Position numbers and translations under genes: made by a program. The notes beneath the pieces are model-generated. The model saw only the letters and a list, made by a program, of their open reading frames with translations, was not told the DNA's origin and searched no databases. Of a stretch of 64,000 bases of DNA, positions 3,019-63,976 are shown piece after piece. Positions within the stretch are counted from its first letter, which is position 1; each line of letters starts with the position of its first letter. The stretch lies in sequence record AP019418.1; one strand, written 5' to 3'.

Positions 3019-3191
3019 TTATTTATCCTCATTTACAGTGAATGCAAACATAGTACATTTCGGTTTAGCCGGATGTTGACACCATTCCTTCGAAACCTTA
3101 CCTTCGGGTTTGGTCAGTTCATAATAGAACTCACCGCAAGCAGCAGCGAGTCCCATCAGAACTGCAAGAAAACCTACACCTATTTTGGTTT

Positions 3192-3590
3192 TCACTTAGC
3201 GATGATCCGTTGTACGAAATGTTGGAGATTTGCAACCAGCCGATCGAACTCTTCCTCGGTCAGCTGATCACGATGAGATTCCAGAAGTACTTCTACCTCC
3301 GGAAGAACGTTCAGAGCGATGTCCAGCTGGATACGCGAAATGAACTCTGCGACATCCAGTTCACGATCACGACGAAGATGATTTACCAGCTTGCGATGTT
3401 GTTCACTGTTACAGTAGGTGGAGATCTTATCGATAAGAATATCAGAGATACTGCTTTCGATCTGTTCGGCTACAGCCTGACCGTCTTCCTTTACGGTAGC
3501 TTTGACCGCGAGGATGGCAGCAACGGCTGTTGCGCCAACTGCCAGTGCAATAAGACCAAGACCAAGTGCGTTTTCTTTGATGAAGTTCAT
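3192..3590 (-). CDS. hypothetical protein with N-terminal TM helix
   Basis: 132 aa; ALGLGLIALAVGATAVAAILAV. Confidence 0.75.
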   Translation of the reverse strand: MNFIKENALGLGLIALAVGATAVAAILAVKATVKEDGQAVAEQIESSISDILIDKISTYCNSEQHRKLVNHLRRDRELDVAEFISRIQLDIALNVLPEVEVLLESHRDQLTEEEFDRLVANLQHFVQRIIAK

Positions 3591-11236: not shown

Positions 11237-12400
11237 ATGTCTACTAAATCTCAACTACCAAAGAAAATCTTCAATGTTGCTAAGAGTGATTATCATCTAC
11301 CGGAAATTATTCTTGGAGATGATCCAGGTCTACTAGATTCAATCCACACTCATTATCCTAAAATGTGGGAGCTATATAAGCGTCTAAAGATGCTTGATTG
11401 GGATGAGCTAGAATTTGACTTTTCCACTTGTCTAGTAGAATTTGAAACGTGTGATAAATCAACTTATGACATGATGATTAAGACACTGGCCTGGCAATGG
11501 GAAGCTGACTCTGTAGCCAGTCGTTCCATTGTTAATATTCTATCACCTGTCATGACAGATTCACGAGTATGGGCGGGATATGTACGTATTAATGATAATG
11601 AAGACGTACATGCTTTAACTTATTCTGAAATTGTACGTAATAGCTTTAAAGATCCTAAAGTTATTCTAGACGAAATTCTTAGGGTAGAAGAAGCACAAGA
11701 ACGAATGGTTGCAGTAGCCCGCACTATGGGTGAAGCACATGACGCAGTTCATGCGTATGCTCTTAATCAGGTACCCAATGATCAAGAACTTTACAATAAA
11801 GTATTCATGTTCTTCATCGCTCTATATTTCCTAGAACGTATCCAGTTCATGGCATCCTTTGCAGTAACCTTTGCTATTGGTCGTACTGGTGCATTCCAGC
11901 AAATTGCAGCCGCTGTTAAGAAAATTGCCCAAGACGAATTCGAAATCCATGCACAATATGGACAAGAAGTTATTCGTGCACTACTGGCAACTGAACGCGG
12001 TAAACTCGCTTACAGTCAATGTAAAGATAAAATCATTGAACTACTATGGGAAATTGTAAAGACTGAAGTTACCTGGGTTAATTATCTATTCTCTGAAGGT
12101 CGTGAACTAACTGGTGTTAATGCGACTAAACTTATTAACTGGGTACTTTTCAATGCTAATGCCGCAGCAACATTCCTAAGTATTGAAAATGATGTTGTAG
12201 AACAGTATCAAGTGGAGTTTAAAGAATCAGCTGGATTTGATTTTGTTTGGCCAGAGAAAAACCCACTTCTTTATATGGAAGACTACCTAGATATTTCATC
12301 AACCCAAGCATCTCCTCAGGAAGAAGAGAAGCCTGATTACATGGTCAACGTTGTAAATGATGTTGGTGAAGAAGAAGAATTTGAGGTTGACTTCTTATGA
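11237..12400 (+). CDS. nrdB: ribonucleoside-diphosphate reductase class Ia, beta subunit
   Basis: EADSV, NEDVHALTY, LERIQF, QDEFEIH diiron/tyrosyl motifs; PQEEEKPDYM C-terminal motif; adjacent to nrdA. Confidence 0.95.
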   Translation: MSTKSQLPKKIFNVAKSDYHLPEIILGDDPGLLDSIHTHYPKMWELYKRLKMLDWDELEFDFSTCLVEFETCDKSTYDMMIKTLAWQWEADSVASRSIVNILSPVMTDSRVWAGYVRINDNEDVHALTYSEIVRNSFKDPKVILDEILRVEEAQERMVAVARTMGEAHDAVHAYALNQVPNDQELYNKVFMFFIALYFLERIQFMASFAVTFAIGRTGAFQQIAAAVKKIAQDEFEIHAQYGQEVIRALLATERGKLAYSQCKDKIIELLWEIVKTEVTWVNYLFSEGRELTGVNATKLINWVLFNANAAATFLSIENDVVEQYQVEFKESAGFDFVWPEKNPLLYMEDYLDISSTQASPQEEEKPDYMVNVVNDVGEEEEFEVDFL

Positions 12401-12810
12401 TTAAGATTATCGCATTCGTAGTTTTAATGTGGTCCACTGTCCTATTTGCAGCAACTGAAGTAAAATCAACTACAGATGGTATTATTGCACATTCAGAATG
12501 TCAGCTAGTTGCTAAAGATAGTAGTGTTGTCGGCACTACTGTTGGAGGTGCGGTTGGAGCCACCGCAGGCGCTGTGTTAGGTCGAGCAATCTTTGGTAAA
12601 TCTGGAGGTTGGGTAGGTGGTTTAATCGGTGGTGCCGCAGGCGGCGCAGTCGGTAATAATGTTAGTGCTACTGAAACATTTCAATGTAAACTGATTGTTA
12701 ATACAGATGGCAAGCAGTACATGGTTCAAACAGTTACCAATGAAAAACCAAAGGTTGGTGATAAAGTCACTGTTGTTGAAATGAATGATGGTACACGAGA
12801 TATAATGTAG
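12397..12810 (+). CDS. glycine-zipper (SlyB/Pcp-like) envelope protein
   Basis: signal peptide; GTTVGGAVGATAGAVLG...GGLIGGAAGGAVGN; C-terminal beta domain (KVGDKV). Confidence 0.75.
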   Translation: MIKIIAFVVLMWSTVLFAATEVKSTTDGIIAHSECQLVAKDSSVVGTTVGGAVGATAGAVLGRAIFGKSGGWVGGLIGGAAGGAVGNNVSATETFQCKLIVNTDGKQYMVQTVTNEKPKVGDKVTVVEMNDGTRDIM

Positions 12811-45276: not shown

Positions 45277-45306
45277 GTAATATAGATTTCAAAAAAAATT
45301 TAATGT
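45277..45306 (-). promoter_or_regulatory. early promoter, subtype B
   Basis: GTAATATAGATTTCAAAAAAAATTTAATG is identical to 61387-61415. Confidence 0.8.
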
Positions 45307-45340
45307 AAAAGCCCTCTCCTTTGGGAGAGGGTTTATGACT

Positions 45341-45448
45341 TTATTTATATTTTTTCTTATGAGTGTGATAAATATAGCTAAATAGCATACCGATTGACAT
45401 TGATACAGCTACCATACCCACATAGAAAAGTTCATTACTAAGTTGCAT
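45341..45448 (-). CDS. small membrane protein (35 aa), not in ORF track
   Basis: GAGG RBS; [21 protein letters not shown] then KKKYK. Confidence 0.6.
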
Positions 45449-45530: not shown

Positions 45531-45770
45531 TTATTTCTTATAACTCTCAGGGCATCCCATTTTGAGTTTGCCATCCTTTGGGTCTTCAGCGAATAATACT
45601 TCATCTGGACACTTCTTAACAGGAGTGTCCTTCGCCTTATCTTCCCATTCTACAACAGGCATTTCTAATTTCTTACGAAATTGATACGTATCATAAAGAA
45701 CATACGTAATCATTCCCATAAGAGAGATTACCCATACCCATGCAACAATTAGGATGATTCTAGTTATCAT
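45531..45770 (-). CDS. membrane-anchored hypothetical protein (79 aa)
   Basis: N-terminal TM; C-terminal C..C pair. Confidence 0.7.
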   Translation of the reverse strand: MITRIILIVAWVWVISLMGMITYVLYDTYQFRKKLEMPVVEWEDKAKDTPVKKCPDEVLFAEDPKDGKLKMGCPESYKK

Positions 45771-46137
45771 ACAACTCCTCGCCGACTATATTGAAACACC
45801 CATTACTGAGTTTTTCAGTCAGCATCTCACCAAGATCACTTCCCTCGCTCTTTGCCAAAAGCTTAAGTGCGGGATCAGTGAGATTTTGGTATATTACATC
45901 GACATTATCCAATGCGATATTAATAGCGAGTGCCTTATCACTCTGGTTTTTATCTATGGCAATGGATAGTTCATCTTGCAGTATTGCATACATCTCCAAT
46001 GGCTCACCGCCATTAGTGTAGAATTGAACCATATTCTTTGCCAAGCTGTGCAGCACGTAGCAAGATGACACGGTTACGGGTTGTGCATTAACCGACATTG
46101 CTACCATAGTGATAATGAGCGAGAAGACGTATTTCAT
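45760..46137 (-). CDS. secreted two-Cys helical protein (family member)
   Basis: signal peptide ending VNA; TVSSC...NGCFNIVGE. Confidence 0.75.
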   Translation of the reverse strand: MKYVFSLIITMVAMSVNAQPVTVSSCYVLHSLAKNMVQFYTNGGEPLEMYAILQDELSIAIDKNQSDKALAINIALDNVDVIYQNLTDPALKLLAKSEGSDLGEMLTEKLSNGCFNIVGEELYDN

Positions 46138-46169
46138 CCTATTTTCCTTTTGAAAGTATTCGATATGAA

Positions 46170-46625
46170 TTAAATGAGTTCAACAATTACCATGTGAGTG
46201 AATTTCTCACCAATATGCTTCATGCAGTAATTGCCATAATACCCGCTGATAAAAGCTGCCAGATTAGGAGTAGTCACATTGTAACCTTGACTACGGATAT
46301 AATCATGGATCTCTTTACTGTTAAGGTCATTATTGATTTTATTAAGACTATTGAATACGAATGTTAACGCAATCCAATTATTGGTATCCAACTCATCTTT
46401 GAGTTTAGCAGAGTTGTTGAGCATAAGCACACCAACTTCATCTGCGCTATGACCTTCACTCATTCGAAATACAGCTTGTTTAGTAATGGTTTCAACCATT
46501 GCACACGACTGCACAGTGAGTTGAGCATCTTTTTTACCAATCTTGATTTCAGCCATTGCGGTATTGAACATGATACCGGTAATGGCAATGAGACCAGCGA
46601 AAGCTGCTGCAATTACATTTTTCAT
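46170..46625 (-). CDS. secreted two-Cys helical protein (family member)
   Basis: signal peptide ending AMA; TVQSC...NYCMKHIGEKF. Confidence 0.75.
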   Translation of the reverse strand: MKNVIAAAFAGLIAITGIMFNTAMAEIKIGKKDAQLTVQSCAMVETITKQAVFRMSEGHSADEVGVLMLNNSAKLKDELDTNNWIALTFVFNSLNKINNDLNSKEIHDYIRSQGYNVTTPNLAAFISGYYGNYCMKHIGEKFTHMVIVELI

Positions 46626-46642
46626 TTTAAATCCTTCTTTAT

Positions 46643-47026
46643 TTATTTAATGGTAAGAATAGTAATTTTTTCAGGATTTACTGGAACTTTAATTTTAGAT
46701 TTATGTTGGAGAAACTCAACAACCACCATAGACTTATCCATTTTATACACTTCACATACTTTGACAAGCCTATCTACTACGCAACCAATTTTACCGGCAT
46801 TTTGAGAAAAGAAAGATTTTGCTTTTCTAATAGCCTCGCGTTTCTCAAGCATTTCCATATGCATATTTTCAATATGTTTATCGCGTTGAACACGATTAAA
46901 CTTACGCATATGTCGTTCGATCTTACTAATTTCAGAAGAGTGTAATGAATAAGCAGCAGCTTCTTTCAGTTTCTCATATACTTCCACTGCCATTACCACG
47001 TGATCATCTTCAAAATTTCTTTTCAT
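46643..47026 (-). CDS. hypothetical protein (127 aa)
   Basis: ORF track. Confidence 0.7.
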   Translation of the reverse strand: MKRNFEDDHVVMAVEVYEKLKEAAAYSLHSSEISKIERHMRKFNRVQRDKHIENMHMEMLEKREAIRKAKSFFSQNAGKIGCVVDRLVKVCEVYKMDKSMVVVEFLQHKSKIKVPVNPEKITILTIK

Positions 47027-47039
47027 ATCTATGCCTTTT

Positions 47040-47834
47040 TCACTGTTTGATTAAATTTGACACTGCTTCTTGTTTACATTGAGTATTCATCCATAATGCA
47101 ATGTCTTTGGGTTCTTGTCCAGTTTCCACCATATCGATAATGATACGGGTATTACGTTGTGCTTTCTCACGGGCATTTAACATATCAGGATCATTAATAA
47201 TGAATTCCCTACCCATAACTGGATCTAATCCAATATAAGCTTTAGATGCAATAGTTCTCACCATTGCTTCATATTGGTCACATCCACGTTCAGTTAATAC
47301 AAGGTTATCTGCATTGGCACTACCGCCAAATAGCAAACCTAGGAATCCATAGAAAAAAGTGTGACGTATTGTCTTCCAACAAATACGCATCTCTTCATTT
47401 TTTGTATAAAGCTTTTCCCAATCAAACATTAAATAGAAACTTTCTTTTTGGATAGAAGGGTGTAACCAAATAGGTTTAATACTTACTTCAAGAAGTTTAC
47501 TATTTGGATTTTTACCAATAAAGATAACTTCAACAATGGCTCGTGCTAAAGCATCTTTTTCTTTACCATTCCATCCAAATTTTATTTCATCAGCCGTGAT
47601 ATAAAGACGTATTCCGTCACCCACGTATTTGGGTAACCAAACAGCTTTACCTAGTTGCATTGGAACACTATTAGGGATCCCCCCAACCATCCAGGTAGCA
47701 TTGGTGAAATGAATAGCGACATCATCATTTAACCACTTTAGAATAGCTGGCCTTACCCAGCTATCTACCAAATTACCACATGTCAATGCAGCTAGCATAG
47801 CCATGAGTATAATGACAATATAAATACTAACCAT
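47040..47834 (-). CDS. membrane protein fused to a secreted two-Cys module
   Basis: N-terminal TM; internal signal-like MRICW...GLLFGGSANA then TERGC...TQC. Confidence 0.65.
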   Translation of the reverse strand: MVSIYIVIILMAMLAALTCGNLVDSWVRPAILKWLNDDVAIHFTNATWMVGGIPNSVPMQLGKAVWLPKYVGDGIRLYITADEIKFGWNGKEKDALARAIVEVIFIGKNPNSKLLEVSIKPIWLHPSIQKESFYLMFDWEKLYTKNEEMRICWKTIRHTFFYGFLGLLFGGSANADNLVLTERGCDQYEAMVRTIASKAYIGLDPVMGREFIINDPDMLNAREKAQRNTRIIIDMVETGQEPKDIALWMNTQCKQEAVSNLIKQ

Positions 47835-47837
47835 ATT

Positions 47838-48197
47838 CTACTCCAAGTTAAATTTAGTACCAATTGCTTCAACACAGTTTTCAGCTAGCCTATCTAGAAT
47901 AGCTCCATTGGTAAATCCTTTTCGTTTATTTACGCGAATATCAACTAAGTTTAATTTAGCATATACGGTACCTGCATAGAACTCTAAGTCATCCATATCC
48001 TTACGAGAGATCATATCTAACTGCATCATTATCTCAAATTGGGATAGGTTCTTATCATAAAGCTCAGTTGCTTTTTGTGAAAGATTTACTGCCACATTAC
48101 ATGATTTCTTAGTAATACCCACTTCTACAGCGTGGGCAGGCTGACATGCAATGGACAGGATTGGCAGGAAAAGGAATAATAGCCAATTCTTAAGCAT
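47838..48197 (-). CDS. secreted two-Cys helical protein (family member)
   Basis: signal peptide ending AHA; TKKSC...ENCVEAIGTKF. Confidence 0.75.
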   Translation of the reverse strand: MLKNWLLFLFLPILSIACQPAHAVEVGITKKSCNVAVNLSQKATELYDKNLSQFEIMMQLDMISRKDMDDLEFYAGTVYAKLNLVDIRVNKRKGFTNGAILDRLAENCVEAIGTKFNLE

Positions 48198-48209
48198 GTT
48201 GTACCTCCA

Positions 48210-48617
48210 TTATTTTAGAGTAAGTGGTTTTGCTTCAAACGCACCTGCCGCTACACAACGCTGGAAATAACCATCAATGATGAATTTCTCAGGAGTGGTC
48301 TTATAGACTTTAGCAGCATTTGTTGCACGTGGCAAACTTGCCTCAATTGCCATTTTATCTACCTTAGACCATAGGTAAAATAGACCAGTGAGTTCTTCAA
48401 CTTTAGACTGGTTGGTCTTTAGATCTTTAGTGTTATTAAGGATATAATGAATCCTTTCATAAGTCTTCATTTGCACTTCAGTTACAGATGCACCTTTTAC
48501 AAACAATTCATCTGCCTGTTTTACAAACTCGATGCATGAATCACGATTAGTGTACATGACAGCCGAGTTAGCAGTGATAGTTACAATAGACAACATAAAT
48601 ACAATTACATATTTCAT
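48210..48617 (-). CDS. secreted two-Cys helical protein (family member)
   Basis: signal peptide; TNRDSC...QRC. Confidence 0.7.
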   Translation of the reverse strand: MKYVIVFMLSIVTITANSAVMYTNRDSCIEFVKQADELFVKGASVTEVQMKTYERIHYILNNTKDLKTNQSKVEELTGLFYLWSKVDKMAIEASLPRATNAAKVYKTTPEKFIIDGYFQRCVAAGAFEAKPLTLK

Positions 48618-48643: not shown

Positions 48644-48907
48644 TTAACTATTGGTTTCACCACGAGTATTGAATTCTAAATCCAATACAACTTTAGTAAA
48701 TTCTTCCAGTGCACCACCCTCGTAGATGAGTGGGTCACTGTCACCCCGGTACATGCTACCTACCGGTACTTGACCACGAAACACCATCAGCATATCGTTT
48801 TTTACTATGACATGATGTTCATCCCCGACAGCAATGTCTTGGATGTGTCTCCAGCGTTCACGCAGTAAGCTGCAAGCGCACCATACGGATTTCAAACGTT
48901 CAGTCAT
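48644..48907 (-). CDS. hypothetical protein (87 aa)
   Basis: GAGGG RBS; follows early promoter 48941-48948. Confidence 0.7.
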   Translation of the reverse strand: MTERLKSVWCACSLLRERWRHIQDIAVGDEHHVIVKNDMLMVFRGQVPVGSMYRGDSDPLIYEGGALEEFTKVVLDLEFNTRGETNS

Positions 48908-49025
48908 TGTATTGCCCTCTTGGTTATTAAATTCATATTTGTAATATAGCTTTTTAAATAGTTTAAATACAAAAAAAGATAAATAAAACCCTCCCCGAAG
49001 GGAGGGTGTATATTAAGTAATTATT

Positions 49026-59524: not shown

Positions 59525-59782
59525 CTATTTATTTACACAGATTAGAGTATGTTCTACTTTACTAGTACTAGAAGAAAAATAACGTAATAGAACACCATCA
59601 CTGATTTTTACAGTCTCTACATTATTACGAATAGCACTTGCTTTAGCTAGTTTTTGAATGCGCTCAATCGCGCTAAAACAAGTAGCCATGTCAGAGAACT
59701 CAGCGGTTGACTGCGATGCACCATTGGCTTGATAACCAGCGATACTGATACTACTAAAAAGAATTGCTAAAGTTGCATTCAT
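59525..59782 (-). CDS. small secreted/membrane protein with F...C..A and C-terminal C
   Basis: 85 aa; hydrophobic N-terminus. Confidence 0.65.
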   Translation of the reverse strand: MNATLAILFSSISIAGYQANGASQSTAEFSDMATCFSAIERIQKLAKASAIRNNVETVKISDGVLLRYFSSSTSKVEHTLICVNK

Positions 59783-60709: not shown

Positions 60710-61177
60710 TTATAGGAAGATATCTTCTACTGAGGGCACTATATTCTTTTCTTTTACAAGTTCAGTAGATTTGGTATAATGTGCATTAAATAGTTTCTTT
60801 AAATCTGCTTTTTCATATTTTACAGTATCTGCTAATTTCCAAATAGTAAGACCTAGATGAATACTAACTGAATTAACATGTTTTACGCATAGATCAATTA
60901 ATTTGTTAAACTCTTCTAATTCATTTTTAATCAACGTTGCATCTAAAGCTTGGTGCAAACGATTAGATAATTTAACTTTATCTTTGTCAATTGTAAAGTT
61001 ATTTTCAATATCCTTAGCACTCATCGGTGGTTCAACTTTATACCACACATTGGTTAGTTTACCGTCCACACGCGTCGTGATGGGATGTTTATAATCAGTC
61101 CAACTTCTATGTAGATTATGTTTATCATCAAGAACATCTACAGTAACTTTCTCATTACCTGTAAAGAATGGATACAT
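60710..61177 (-). CDS. hypothetical protein (155 aa)
   Basis: TAATG coupling to upstream small ORF. Confidence 0.75.
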   Translation of the reverse strand: MYPFFTGNEKVTVDVLDDKHNLHRSWTDYKHPITTRVDGKLTNVWYKVEPPMSAKDIENNFTIDKDKVKLSNRLHQALDATLIKNELEEFNKLIDLCVKHVNSVSIHLGLTIWKLADTVKYEKADLKKLFNAHYTKSTELVKEKNIVPSVEDIFL

Positions 61178-61350
61178 TAGGTTGCCTTTATTTTATCAAT
61201 GAGTAATTTTAATAGTTCATCATTAGTTAAATTGTCTTTATTTTTAATAATGTCTTTTAGTTTAAACATATTGAAAGTATACCACAACCACTTATGAATT
61301 ATATAACAAATCACTATAACTAATAATAGTAGTGAATGTAATGCTAGCAT
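61177..61350 (-). CDS. small membrane protein (57 aa), not in ORF track
   Basis: MLALHSLLLLVIVICYIIHKWLW...; first gene after early promoter 61387-61394. Confidence 0.65.
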   Translation of the reverse strand: MLALHSLLLLVIVICYIIHKWLWYTFNMFKLKDIIKNKDNLTNDELLKLLIDKIKAT

Positions 61351-61451
61351 TATAACTACCTATTTTGATATGACTTGACCAAATATGTAATATAGATTTC
61401 AAAAAAAATTTAATGCAATAAAGGAGAGCTAAATAGCTCTCCTATTTATGC

Positions 61452-61742
61452 TTATTTATTTTTCTTTCTTGACTTATCTTTAATAACTAAGTCTAATGCT
61501 TCAAACATTTTAACAGCAGTTAAATGGTCGATAGAGTATGCCTTTTTACGTAAACGTCCAATAGCTACTGTATACTGGTATTCAGATAAACCATCACTCA
61601 TATTGTCAATAATTGATAGTGCTTCTTTATAAAGCCTGTTACACTTTATCGTGTGTTTGATGGCATAATAACCCCAGTTAATTAAAGCCATCATTATAAT
61701 CAGAAACAAAATACCTATAATTACTGTCATGATATCATTCAT
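61452..61742 (-). CDS. membrane-anchored hypothetical protein (96 aa)
   Basis: N-terminal TM. Confidence 0.7.
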   Translation of the reverse strand: MNDIMTVIIGILFLIIMMALINWGYYAIKHTIKCNRLYKEALSIIDNMSDGLSEYQYTVAIGRLRKKAYSIDHLTAVKMFEALDLVIKDKSRKKNK

Positions 61743-62052
61743 TTGCTGTTTCCCTATTATTACATTTTAATATAATCAATGAGTTGATATCGTAAATAAA
61801 AGATGTAAAAATATGTTGATTTGTTATTTTAGATGATTCTTTATCTATAATGTCTTGGACAGCATTTTGATAGAAAAAATAACTTATGCCATTGGGCATT
61901 TTATCTAATACATATCTAACCTTATAAACACCCATCCAGTGAATATAATGATTTTTTATATTAATAATGAAAGTTACACATGTTGATATAGCCGTTAGTG
62001 TTATCATTGATATAACAAATACTTTATACATTTGCAACCCACAGATTCTCAT
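61735..62052 (-). CDS. membrane-anchored hypothetical protein (105 aa)
   Basis: N-terminal TM; resembles 61452-61742. Confidence 0.65.
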   Translation of the reverse strand: MRICGLQMYKVFVISMITLTAISTCVTFIINIKNHYIHWMGVYKVRYVLDKMPNGISYFFYQNAVQDIIDKESSKITNQHIFTSFIYDINSLIILKCNNRETANE

Positions 62053-62087: not shown

Positions 62088-62456
62088 TTATTTTACAACC
62101 ACAGCTTTACCGTAGTTGTTATCCATACAGGTTTTAAATGATGTAACGTATGCATCACGTGGGCTTTGTCTACGTGAATACACAACGTGCACCTCTTTAA
62201 TTGCTGCTGGGAGAACATTGTAAAGAACGTTATCTTTGTTCTTCACGCCGTACCCTTTTAGGGATCGTAGGTTTTCTTCCCATTGTAAAATGGGTGTTTT
62301 ACGCTGACGTGCTTCTGCTGTGGCATGTGCTATAAGTGCAACACCATTACAGTAATTCTCGTCAACTACCAACGATGCAGCTAGTGGGTTTGATACGTAT
62401 AACAACGTACTTAATACGGCCACTAACTTCATTACGTGTGTTAAACATTGCATCAC
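62088..62456 (-). CDS. secreted two-Cys helical protein (family member)
   Basis: signal peptide ending PLAA; ENYC..VA..A..TA.ARQ...FKTC. Confidence 0.75.
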   Translation of the reverse strand: MMQCLTHVMKLVAVLSTLLYVSNPLAASLVVDENYCNGVALIAHATAEARQRKTPILQWEENLRSLKGYGVKNKDNVLYNVLPAAIKEVHVVYSRRQSPRDAYVTSFKTCMDNNYGKAVVVK

Positions 62457-63646: not shown

Positions 63647-63976
63647 TCACATATATTTCAAATGTTTGCCAATTGGTCTGTTAGGGTTATACATATAACC
63701 ACGACCTGCTGCTGCCCTAATTACTAATTTCTGCATATCTGTTAATTTTCTATAATTATCACCAATTAATTTAAGTATAATACTTTCTATAGAATCATTA
63801 GTTAATTCAGAAGGATCTGTTACTTTGAAATAATTATATACTAATTCTCTTTTAACTAGAAAATCAACTCTTCGTTTTTCTTTAATTCGTTTATAACGTT
63901 GCGATACATGGATAAATGAAAATAAAACAACTATCCAGAATAAGGTCAAAAGTAGGTACTCATCAACTACATTCAT
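63647..63976 (-). CDS. membrane-anchored hypothetical protein (109 aa)
   Basis: N-terminal TM then basic segment. Confidence 0.7.
   Translation of the reverse strand: MNVVDEYLLLTLFWIVVLFSFIHVSQRYKRIKEKRRVDFLVKRELVYNYFKVTDPSELTNDSIESIILKLIGDNYRKLTDMQKLVIRAAAGRGYMYNPNRPIGKHLKYM

Follow-up and report, generated by a model that had tools for sequence, protein, structure and literature searches.

What do the small exported proteins with paired cysteines, encoded side by side in a jumbo phage genome, have in common, and what might they do in the infected cell? The question is raised by a 64,000-nucleotide stretch of sequence record AP019418.1 (hereafter the window), which is 100% identical to phiKZ and to Pseudomonas phage PA02 and comes from a phiKZ-species genome. 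A sequence-only reading of the window had singled out five open reading frames (ORFs) between positions 45,760 and 48,617, and a sixth, distant one at 62088-62456, as a diversified set of disulfide-closed periplasmic helical bundles. The coordinates of all six, their hydrophobic N-termini and the positions of their cysteines are borne out by the ORF list and the sequences, and all six lie on the minus strand, as do all genes of the array described below. In RefSeq they correspond to PHIKZ247, 248, 249, 251, 252 and PHIKZ229, with names that consist of numbers only, and no paper that deals with gp229 or with any of gp247-252 turned up in literature searches. Here, we find on profile evidence that gp247, gp248, gp251 and gp252 belong together as paralogues in a single family of small proteins, and that the C-terminal domain of gp249 (gp249C) and the gp229 family share the predicted fold of this array family. 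The best overall explanation, to which we give a probability of about one half, is that they are an exported, disulfide-stapled early family acting as accessory envelope factors.

Sequence relationships and export signals

Pairwise BLASTP and phmmer comparisons among the six proteins link gp251 and gp252 only, and weakly. The PHROG database places them in six separate, function-less families (gp248 in 15284, gp251 in 22400, gp252 in 26535, gp247 in 27482, gp249 in 22383 and gp229 in 16193), the sole cross-link among these being a weak match of gp251 to phrog_15284 (E 0.0026). In contrast, the present analysis unites four of the families by profile and all six by predicted fold. We compared each protein by hhalign with a family profile built without that protein. 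In these leave-one-out comparisons gp248 (98.8%, E 6e-17), gp251 (97.8%, E 1e-12) and gp252 (91%, E 9e-7) come out as clear homologues; ten unrelated proteins of the window, compared with the family profile as a control, gave P 0.12-0.7. gp247 taken as a single sequence reaches 21% only, and a gp247-type profile aligns with the rest of the family in register over 101 columns (Prob 75%, E 2.5e-5). Its nearest relative is PS119XW gp302 (BLASTP 2e-5; P0010), and we consider it a probable homologue of the family.

The idea that the six proteins form one diversified family thus stands on profiles for gp247, gp248, gp251 and gp252; for gp249C and gp229 it is backed by the predicted fold and not by sequence. 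Compared with the array-family profile, gp249C gives a hidden Markov model (HMM) E-value of 0.013 and an hhalign alignment that is out of register, which is not a significant match, and gp229 gives a Prob of 3-38%, with an alignment that stays in register through the first cysteine. An N-terminal motif, hydrophobic-x-hydrophobic-[T/D]-x-x-x-C, is nevertheless in register across gp249C, gp229 and the array family.

Three of the four paralogues are of a long type: gp247 (48210-48617; 135 amino acids [aa]; signal peptide ending ANS/A, where the slash marks the cleavage site; Cys28 and Cys121), gp251 (46170-46625; 151 aa; AMA/E; Cys41 and Cys134) and gp252 (45760-46137; 125 aa; VNA/Q; Cys26 and Cys114). 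gp248 (47838-48197; 119 aa) represents a short type, in which a lipobox-like LSIAC (Cys18) is followed by AHA/V and the cysteine pair is Cys33 and Cys108. gp249 (47040-47834; 264 aa) is composite: an N-terminal hydrophobic segment and approximately 135 aa with no assigned fold precede an internal signal-like segment (residues 149-178, window 47301-47390) that ends ANA/D, and the two-cysteine domain gp249C makes up the remainder (residues 179-264, window 47043-47300; Cys185 and Cys253). gp229 (62088-62456; 121-122 aa) has a signal peptide and a cysteine pair at 35 and 109, counted from the ATG at 62453.

We screened for signal peptides with an n/h/c heuristic (a positive n-region, an uncharged run of 9-26 residues and small residues at -3 and -1) in 35 sequences: gp229, gp249 taken to start at its internal Met, and 33 members of the family drawn from phiKZ and other phages. 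The heuristic is passed by 33 of the 35, and all 35 have exactly two cysteines beyond the AXA-type site. Both cysteines are invariant in 34 of 34 mature sequences, which otherwise share approximately 20% identity, in line with the low identity outside the cysteines described in the sequence-only reading. In the 34 aligned sequences the cysteines lie in the motifs [ILV]-T-x-x-x-C and C-x-x-x-x-G, 72-75 residues apart in the short type and 86-100 in the long type. Of these two motifs, gp249C keeps only the first (L-T-E-R-G-C), and in gp229 a D replaces the T of the first motif and the G of the second is shifted by one position. gp250 has none of the signal-peptide and two-cysteine features despite its position inside the array.

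The claim that the mature parts hold exactly two cysteines is correct for all 35 sequences when the count begins after the AXA-type site, but the mature form of gp248 may hold three, with Cys18. This residue matches the PROSITE PS00013 lipobox pattern, and a positive n-region is present. Among 13 short-type members, ten have a cysteine at the end of the h-region and nine, gp248 among them, match PS00013; the UniRef cluster of gp248 is named 'Lipoprotein'. Because a type I site, AHA/V, lies five residues past the lipobox cysteine, the cleavage route is ambiguous in silico. We take the short type to be lipid-anchored since a cysteine removed by signal peptidase I would have no reason to be conserved, and gp248 and most of its orthologues are probably lipoproteins. 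In gp249, the second hydrophobic segment carries three positive charges on its N-side and, therefore, the two-cysteine domain should lie outside the cytoplasm, either anchored or released.

Predicted fold of the array family and gp229

We modelled gp248 and gp229 directly and judged gp249 and gp251 through entries of their lengths in the BFVD database. The model of mature gp248 (from a 27-sequence alignment) has a mean predicted local distance difference test score (pLDDT) of 95.4 and a predicted TM-score (pTM) of 0.85, and consists of a strand (2-4), helices at 7-25, 30-43, 48-59, 61-69 and 74-87, and a second strand (92-94), with the cysteines at model residues 10 and 85. The gp229 model (52 sequences; pLDDT 88.7, pTM 0.81) has the same order of elements and cysteines at 11 and 85. 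Common to both is a fold that opens with a short strand, continues with four or five helices and closes with a C-terminal strand paired to the opening one. The helical body, previously a guess, is now backed by two confident models. In both models one cysteine is at the start of helix 1 and the other at the end of the last helix, beside the two-stranded sheet that joins the termini, and each is 6-8 residues from its terminal strand, in the adjoining helix. For the proposed disulfide closure, the cysteine positions and the paired terminal strands speak in favour, while the adjacency of the two cysteines is deduced from the layout of the models.

Superposition of predicted structures had been named beforehand as a test that could refute the family, and its outcome speaks for the family: fold matches inside the array family have TM-scores of 0.72-0.93, and those that link the gp229 and gp248 families have 0.68-0.81. 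In BFVD, the gp248 model retrieves its orthologues with TM-scores of 0.80-0.93, a 151-aa entry of the length of gp251 (A0A494W8Q1; query TM-score [TMq] 0.74, prob 1.0) and a 264-aa entry of the length of gp249 (A0A494WC04; TMq 0.72, root-mean-square deviation [rmsd] 1.7 over 85 columns). It also finds a 121-aa PS119XW protein (TM-score 0.78, prob 1.0). This protein is the top BFVD match of the gp229 model, at 58% identity, and we therefore regard it as the gp229 orthologue. In the reciprocal search, the gp229 model finds the gp248 orthologues of Psa21 (TM-score 0.81, rmsd 2.1) and phiPA3 (0.68), and the fold matches between the two families have a prob of 0.99-1.0 in both directions.

By sequence, the gp229 family is separate from the array family and much better conserved: it comprises 70 clusters, on contigs of up to 318 kb, whose identity to gp229 spans 39-96% and is below 61% in 68 of them. 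gp229 also matches phrog_2315 (E 2.4e-5). We rejected the possibility that gp249 is an artefact of two fused ORFs, as a single ORF with all four cysteines is also present in the divergent relative L018, where gp249 is 69% identical. Upstream of its internal Met149 a purine stretch is present but poorly spaced.

To place the fold among solved structures, we examined the 50 best of 109 Foldseek matches of the gp248 model in the PDB, and none of these reaches an E-value of 1e-3. The top match that keeps the topology is saposin A (4uex; prob 0.87, TM-score 0.60/0.68, rmsd 3.2 over 82 columns), followed by saposin C (2gtg), Na-SLP-1 (3s63) and saposin A (2dob). Four of the seven best matches are, thus, saposin or saposin-like chains (TM-score 0.50-0.68, prob 0.41-0.87, E 0.7-1.3), and saposins are also among the top weak matches of the family sequence profile to PDB chains (E ~1.1). 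No significant match came from searching PDB sequences with the family profile, the gp229 profile or gp249. Saposins have six conserved cysteines that form three disulfides. Like the gp248 family they are bundles of four or five helices in which a disulfide ties the first and last helices, but the phiKZ proteins have two cysteines in the mature domain, equivalent to one disulfide, and in addition a terminal two-stranded sheet. Furthermore, saposins are eukaryotic lipid-binding proteins, to which the phiKZ proteins are likened here by predicted topology. We describe the predicted topology as saposin-like and do not assign the family to the saposin-like proteins (SAPLIPs), because the three defining disulfides are absent.

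In the same BFVD searches, entries named 'Lipoprotein' or 'Exported phage protein' from otherwise unrelated phages match both the gp248 and the gp229 models with TM-scores of 0.43-0.62. They come from BcepSauron, Sphaerotilus phage R1, Vibrio phage NF, Salmonella Vi II-E1, the Pseudomonas phages POR1 and PPpW-3, and Escherichia ep3. The saposin-like predicted fold may be widespread among exported phage proteins. That there is a wide, undescribed superfamily of phage-exported saposin-like proteins, spanning Burkholderia, Salmonella, Vibrio, Sphaerotilus and Escherichia phages, which would act on envelope lipids by binding or shifting them in the periplasm of the infected cell, is a bolder proposal that we consider rather unlikely.

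The operon and its relatives

The array unit, from gp246.1 to gp253.1, lies between terminators at 49007-48988 and 45331-45312 and is one operon behind an early-type promoter motif. The upstream terminator, a G+C-rich hairpin with a T run 3' of gp246 (48988-49007, from a terminator scan and the sequence), ends the preceding transcription unit. The promoter-like motif, of the early type read by virion RNA polymerase, is recognised from the sequence at 48941-48983; it consists of a T-rich/ATTTAAA stretch and the core TATATTAC, which is 33 nucleotides (nt) upstream of the start of gp246.1 and which we take to be an early-promoter core. This core turns up at 16 places in the window, where 7.8 would be expected, and 15 of the 16 are on the coding strand. 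An extended AT-rich motif ending in TATATTAC occurs at ten sites, mostly just past hairpin terminators and all on the minus strand (4144, 5995, 6499, 30634, 42592, 45277, 48941, 52015, 52447 and 61387), and these ten are probably the early promoter set of this window. The same motif stands directly 5' of family genes in phiPA3, HPP-Temi and the metagenomic relatives L013 and L018, and it agrees with the published early promoters of jumbo phages that are read by the virion RNA polymerase (PMC7598289, PMC8244752, PMC5312081).

The first gene of the operon, gp246.1 (48644-48907; 87 aa), and gp250 within it (46643-47026; 127 aa) encode proteins that have no signal peptide and are not family members. 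Past gp252, whose end it overlaps by 11 nt, gp253 (45531-45770; 79 aa) encodes a protein that starts with a transmembrane segment and has two cysteines in its tail. gp253.1 (45341-45448; 35 aa), annotated in phiKZ and mapped to the window from RefSeq, is the final ORF ahead of the hairpin terminator that closes the operon (45312-45331), and the next early-type core past this terminator is at 45277-45285. Other phages, too, have small transmembrane proteins with a two-cysteine tail encoded after the array. In PS119XW, HPP-Temi and Phabio (L005:6348-6518, L009:4368-4538 and L004:5351-5506) the tail reads C-x-x-Y-P-L-x-C, and phiKZ gp253 has the same layout and position as these proteins, with no evident sequence relation to them.

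We assign the operon to a temporal class from the promoter motif and one proteomics paper. Churi gp059, a protein 100% identical to gp248, was among the non-structural proteins detected 15 min after infection (PMC11849849). In the mass-spectrometry-based annotation of 201phi2-1, gp367 and gp343 are not marked as virion proteins and neighbouring genes are so marked. Furthermore, a viable phiKZ with a transposon insertion in orf252 has been described, and the orf184-304 region was characterised there as largely non-essential and possibly host-interacting (PMC12676376). gp252 at least is dispensable in laboratory culture.

How far the family extends was explored with an HMMER profile, built from the window proteins and the relatives retrieved, as the sequence-only reading had proposed. 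Against 1.84 billion representatives it gave 28 matches at E<=1e-3. Two of them are short fragments and the rest are proteins of 104-178 aa with a signal peptide and two cysteines, except for one 560-aa, cysteine-rich protein that we read as a false positive. A word-indexed homologue search likewise returned few relatives, and tblastn with gp247, gp249, gp251 and gp252 found phiKZ-species phages only. Orthologues of gp248, at 25-40% identity, are present in phiPA3, Phabio, 201phi2-1, PS119XW, HPP-Temi, Psa21, D6 and RVTF4, and their neighbours include further proteins with the signal-peptide and two-cysteine layout. Judged by these homology searches, the family is confined to Pseudomonas chimalliviruses. 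All relatives found are on contigs of phages or phage-like elements: the entries that bear the label P. aeruginosa lie on contigs of phage-genome size, and those labelled Klebsiella are fragments of 210-640 bp. The partial 'Klebsiella pneumoniae' proteins (P0003-P0006, P0115-P0117 and others) fall in 90%-identity clusters of phiKZ proteins, the four compared with gp248 are 86-91% identical to it, and these proteins look like phiKZ reads that contaminate assemblies.

Counted by sequence, there is one copy in phiPA3, Phabio and 201phi2-1, two in Psa21, RVTF4 and D6, three in PS119XW, HPP-Temi and one metagenomic contig, and four in phiKZ and its divergent relative. Two proteins join the family by fold only in BFVD (TM-score 0.75-0.79, prob 1.0), B3FJU6 of 201phi2-1 (161 aa) and A0A1Y0SWC8 of Phabio (157 aa); they are from phages in which the sequence search gave one member, and they are encoded outside the loci compared. 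In a neighbour-joining tree gp248 falls in the short clade, gp251 groups with gp252, and gp247 groups with PS119XW gp302. Compared with the divergent relative, to which they are 59-96% identical in amino acid sequence, the operon genes have ratios of nonsynonymous to synonymous substitution rates (dN/dS) of 0.03-0.23 and keep every cysteine. This purifying selection, with all cysteines kept, indicates that the array ORFs are real genes, and on the same ratios we rejected strong diversifying selection. In phage record KEN19 the match to gp252 is split into two parts, which corresponds to one break.

The genes that lie between family members are not conserved across lineages. gp250 and gp246.1 were considered as conserved partners and rejected, as neither is kept in other lineages and gp246.1 is absent from L018. 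A protein of ~150 aa with no signal peptide is conserved between short and long members in Psa21, RVTF4, D6 and a metagenomic contig (L006, L007, L010 and L011). It does not match gp249 or gp250, of which it was considered as a possible relative, and has no phiKZ counterpart. No array protein has a match in Pfam, NCBIfam or PADLOC, the MazF, methylase and defence-system models included, and the names given in record MT995928 (phage U5), MazF family for gp247, DNA methylase for gp248 and methyltransferase for gp249, find no support in any of these collections.

Elsewhere in the window there are other small genes for putative exported or membrane proteins. At 59525-59782 (-) an 85-aa protein has a signal-peptide-like N-terminus, Cys35 and Cys82; it has its own PHROG and no profile match to the array family. 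A 137-aa protein encoded at 12397-12810 (+) has a signal peptide, Cys35 and Cys97, and in PHROG it weakly matches parts of tail-associated lysin families. A 58-aa ORF at 3019-3195 (-), with a lipobox cysteine at position 20, overlaps by 4 nt the end of the gene for a 132-aa protein with an N-terminal transmembrane segment (3192-3590, -), a layout that resembles a spanin pair; the published phiKZ spanins are gp141 and gp141.1 (PMC12894885). gp229 is flanked at 61177-62052 and 63647-63976 (-) by genes for four small proteins (57, 96, 105 and 109 aa), each with one N-terminal transmembrane segment, and this part of the genome is rich in small membrane-directed genes.

Possible roles in the envelope

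How might such proteins work? On the explanation that we favour, a Sec-type signal peptide would direct each array-family protein and gp229 out of the cytoplasm of the infected cell; gp248 and most of its orthologues would use the lipobox cysteine instead and become lipid-anchored, and the gp249 domain that follows the second hydrophobic segment would be held outside the cytoplasm. After export, a host periplasmic oxidase would close the single possible disulfide, stapling the ends of the bundle. Soluble, lipid-tethered and membrane-anchored versions of one binding module would then fill the periplasm of the freshly infected cell and bind envelope components, either a lipid or a protein such as a receptor or the tail lysin of an arriving phage, and this binding would shield the cell from a second attack, through superinfection exclusion or protection from lysis from without. 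An accessory envelope role is suggested by the early timing, the export signals, the dispensability, and the divergence of the paralogues into soluble, lipid-tethered and membrane-anchored forms. As for the function itself, an envelope-acting role such as superinfection exclusion is the one that we tentatively rank as most likely, by analogy, since the two best-studied precedents, T4 Spackle (soluble) and T5 Llp (a lipoprotein), are superinfection-exclusion proteins.

T4 Spackle (gp61.3) is an early, periplasmic inhibitor of the gp5 tail lysozyme, with a 75-aa mature helical bundle and a disulfide from Cys29, seven residues past the cleavage site, to Cys81 (PMC7677548). As is predicted for the phiKZ family, it has an early gene, a cleaved signal, a small helical bundle, a single disulfide near both ends and an accessory role. 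It differs in that its bundle is flat and has no terminal strands, it is encoded by one gene rather than an array, and it has no lipoprotein form. Binding of a tail lysin is a feature of Spackle, extended here to the phiKZ proteins as a conjecture by analogy. T5 Llp is a lipoprotein, as gp248 probably is too, and is made soon after infection, and proteins of the Llp/Cor types exclude superinfection by blocking the receptor. In contrast to these, the phiKZ family has a lipobox in the short subfamily only, and we found no sequence or fold relation between them.

Several points weigh against this explanation. Spackle is not among the 50 best of the 109 PDB fold matches of the gp248 model, its sequence is not retrieved when the family profile is compared with all PDB chains at E<=10, and it has no Pfam or PHROG link to the family; with no fold match among those 50 and no sequence match, we restrict the comparison to architecture. 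The envelope targets are candidates by analogy, and the range of mature isoelectric points (pI 4.2-9.5) and of copy number (1-4) is compatible with many functions. The early-promoter assignment comes from the fit to published descriptions rather than from transcript ends at the 48941 site, and the periplasmic location of the gp247-gp252 family and gp229 is predicted from signal peptides only. The position of the cysteines in the models fits one disulfide that closes the bundle ends, with Cys-Cys adjacency deduced from layout. Entries A0A494W8Q1 and A0A494WC04 are probably gp251 and gp249, respectively, judged by length and accession series. Finally, the likeness to saposins does not reach significance, and small helical bundles readily give matches to one another.

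Could the likeness within the set be generic, so that gp229 and gp249C merely resemble the array family, with no shared origin or function? Signal peptides, helices and cysteine pairs are common features, the profiles fail for precisely these two, and the window holds other small exported two-cysteine proteins. However, element order and cysteine placement are identical in the gp248 and gp229 models, the fold matches between the two families are reciprocal at high prob, gp249C superimposes closely over its 85 columns, and the N-terminal motif stays in register, so that we give coincidence very little credence. A role in lipid handling, in which saposin-like proteins would bind or extract envelope lipids (phospholipid, lipopolysaccharide or lipoprotein acyl chains) and remodel membranes, would serve the needs of the phage itself, such as envelope stability in a long cycle, vesiculation or lysis timing, and not the blocking of other phages. 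Saposins and a saposin-like protein are the best topology-keeping solved folds and are among the top weak profile matches, one member is predicted to be lipid-anchored and one membrane-anchored, and many long-type members end in basic, Pro-rich tails. On the other hand, only one of the three saposin disulfides is present, the fold match falls short of significance, and lipid binding is conjectured from the predicted fold; the strong divergence of the paralogues (~20% identity, with the wide spread of pI) suits varied protein targets more than a common lipid. Lipid handling ranks second among the proposed functions, as a rather unlikely candidate.

Neutralisation of toxins had also been proposed, with each paralogue blocking a different toxin that acts in the periplasm (type VI secretion system [T6SS] effectors, bacteriocins or host-defence effectors), like an immunity protein, so that the cell stays alive until burst. 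An array of diverged, exported paralogues in variable copy number would suit this role, and the array is located in a region proposed for host-interacting or defence-related functions (PMC12676376). However, no PADLOC, Pfam or NCBIfam model matches, there is no immunity protein, T6SS-type ones included, among the 50 best of 109 PDB fold matches, and no cognate toxin gene is nearby. The relatives found, moreover, are all on phage or phage-like contigs, with bacterial-labelled entries on contigs of phage size or tiny fragments, and we consider this role unlikely. Control of lysis appears more remote still. T4 RI is early, exported, small and helical, as are the array proteins by prediction, and they might be periplasmic sensors or antiholins of this kind that delay lysis under further phage attack. 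Lysis-inhibition-like behaviour of phiKZ has indeed been discussed, but the periplasmic domain of its holin gp142 is small and its regulator gp143 is cytoplasmic (PMC12894885). The array is also far from the lysis cassette gp141-144, and its proteins match RI in neither fold nor sequence.

Among the jumbo phages that form a nucleus, phiKZ serves as the model, and its use in phage therapy is under consideration; research on it has so far been almost wholly cytoplasmic, centred on the nucleus, ribosomes and polymerases. Approximately 70% of its genes can be lost under laboratory conditions and have no known function (PMC12676376). At least six of its genes now point to the envelope, and predicted lipoprotein, soluble and membrane-anchored forms can be told apart. 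Early envelope proteins are a known kind among phages; the family, or superfamily, described here is new, and its fold has not been described in that role. It is compact, well defined and amenable to structural study. If lipid handling proves true, it would be a new activity for phage proteins, and a lipid-working superfamily, if real, would be the first viral saposin-like lipid handling in bacteria. If superinfection exclusion or envelope protection proves true, the family would matter for the competition between jumbo phages and the other phages that share their host.

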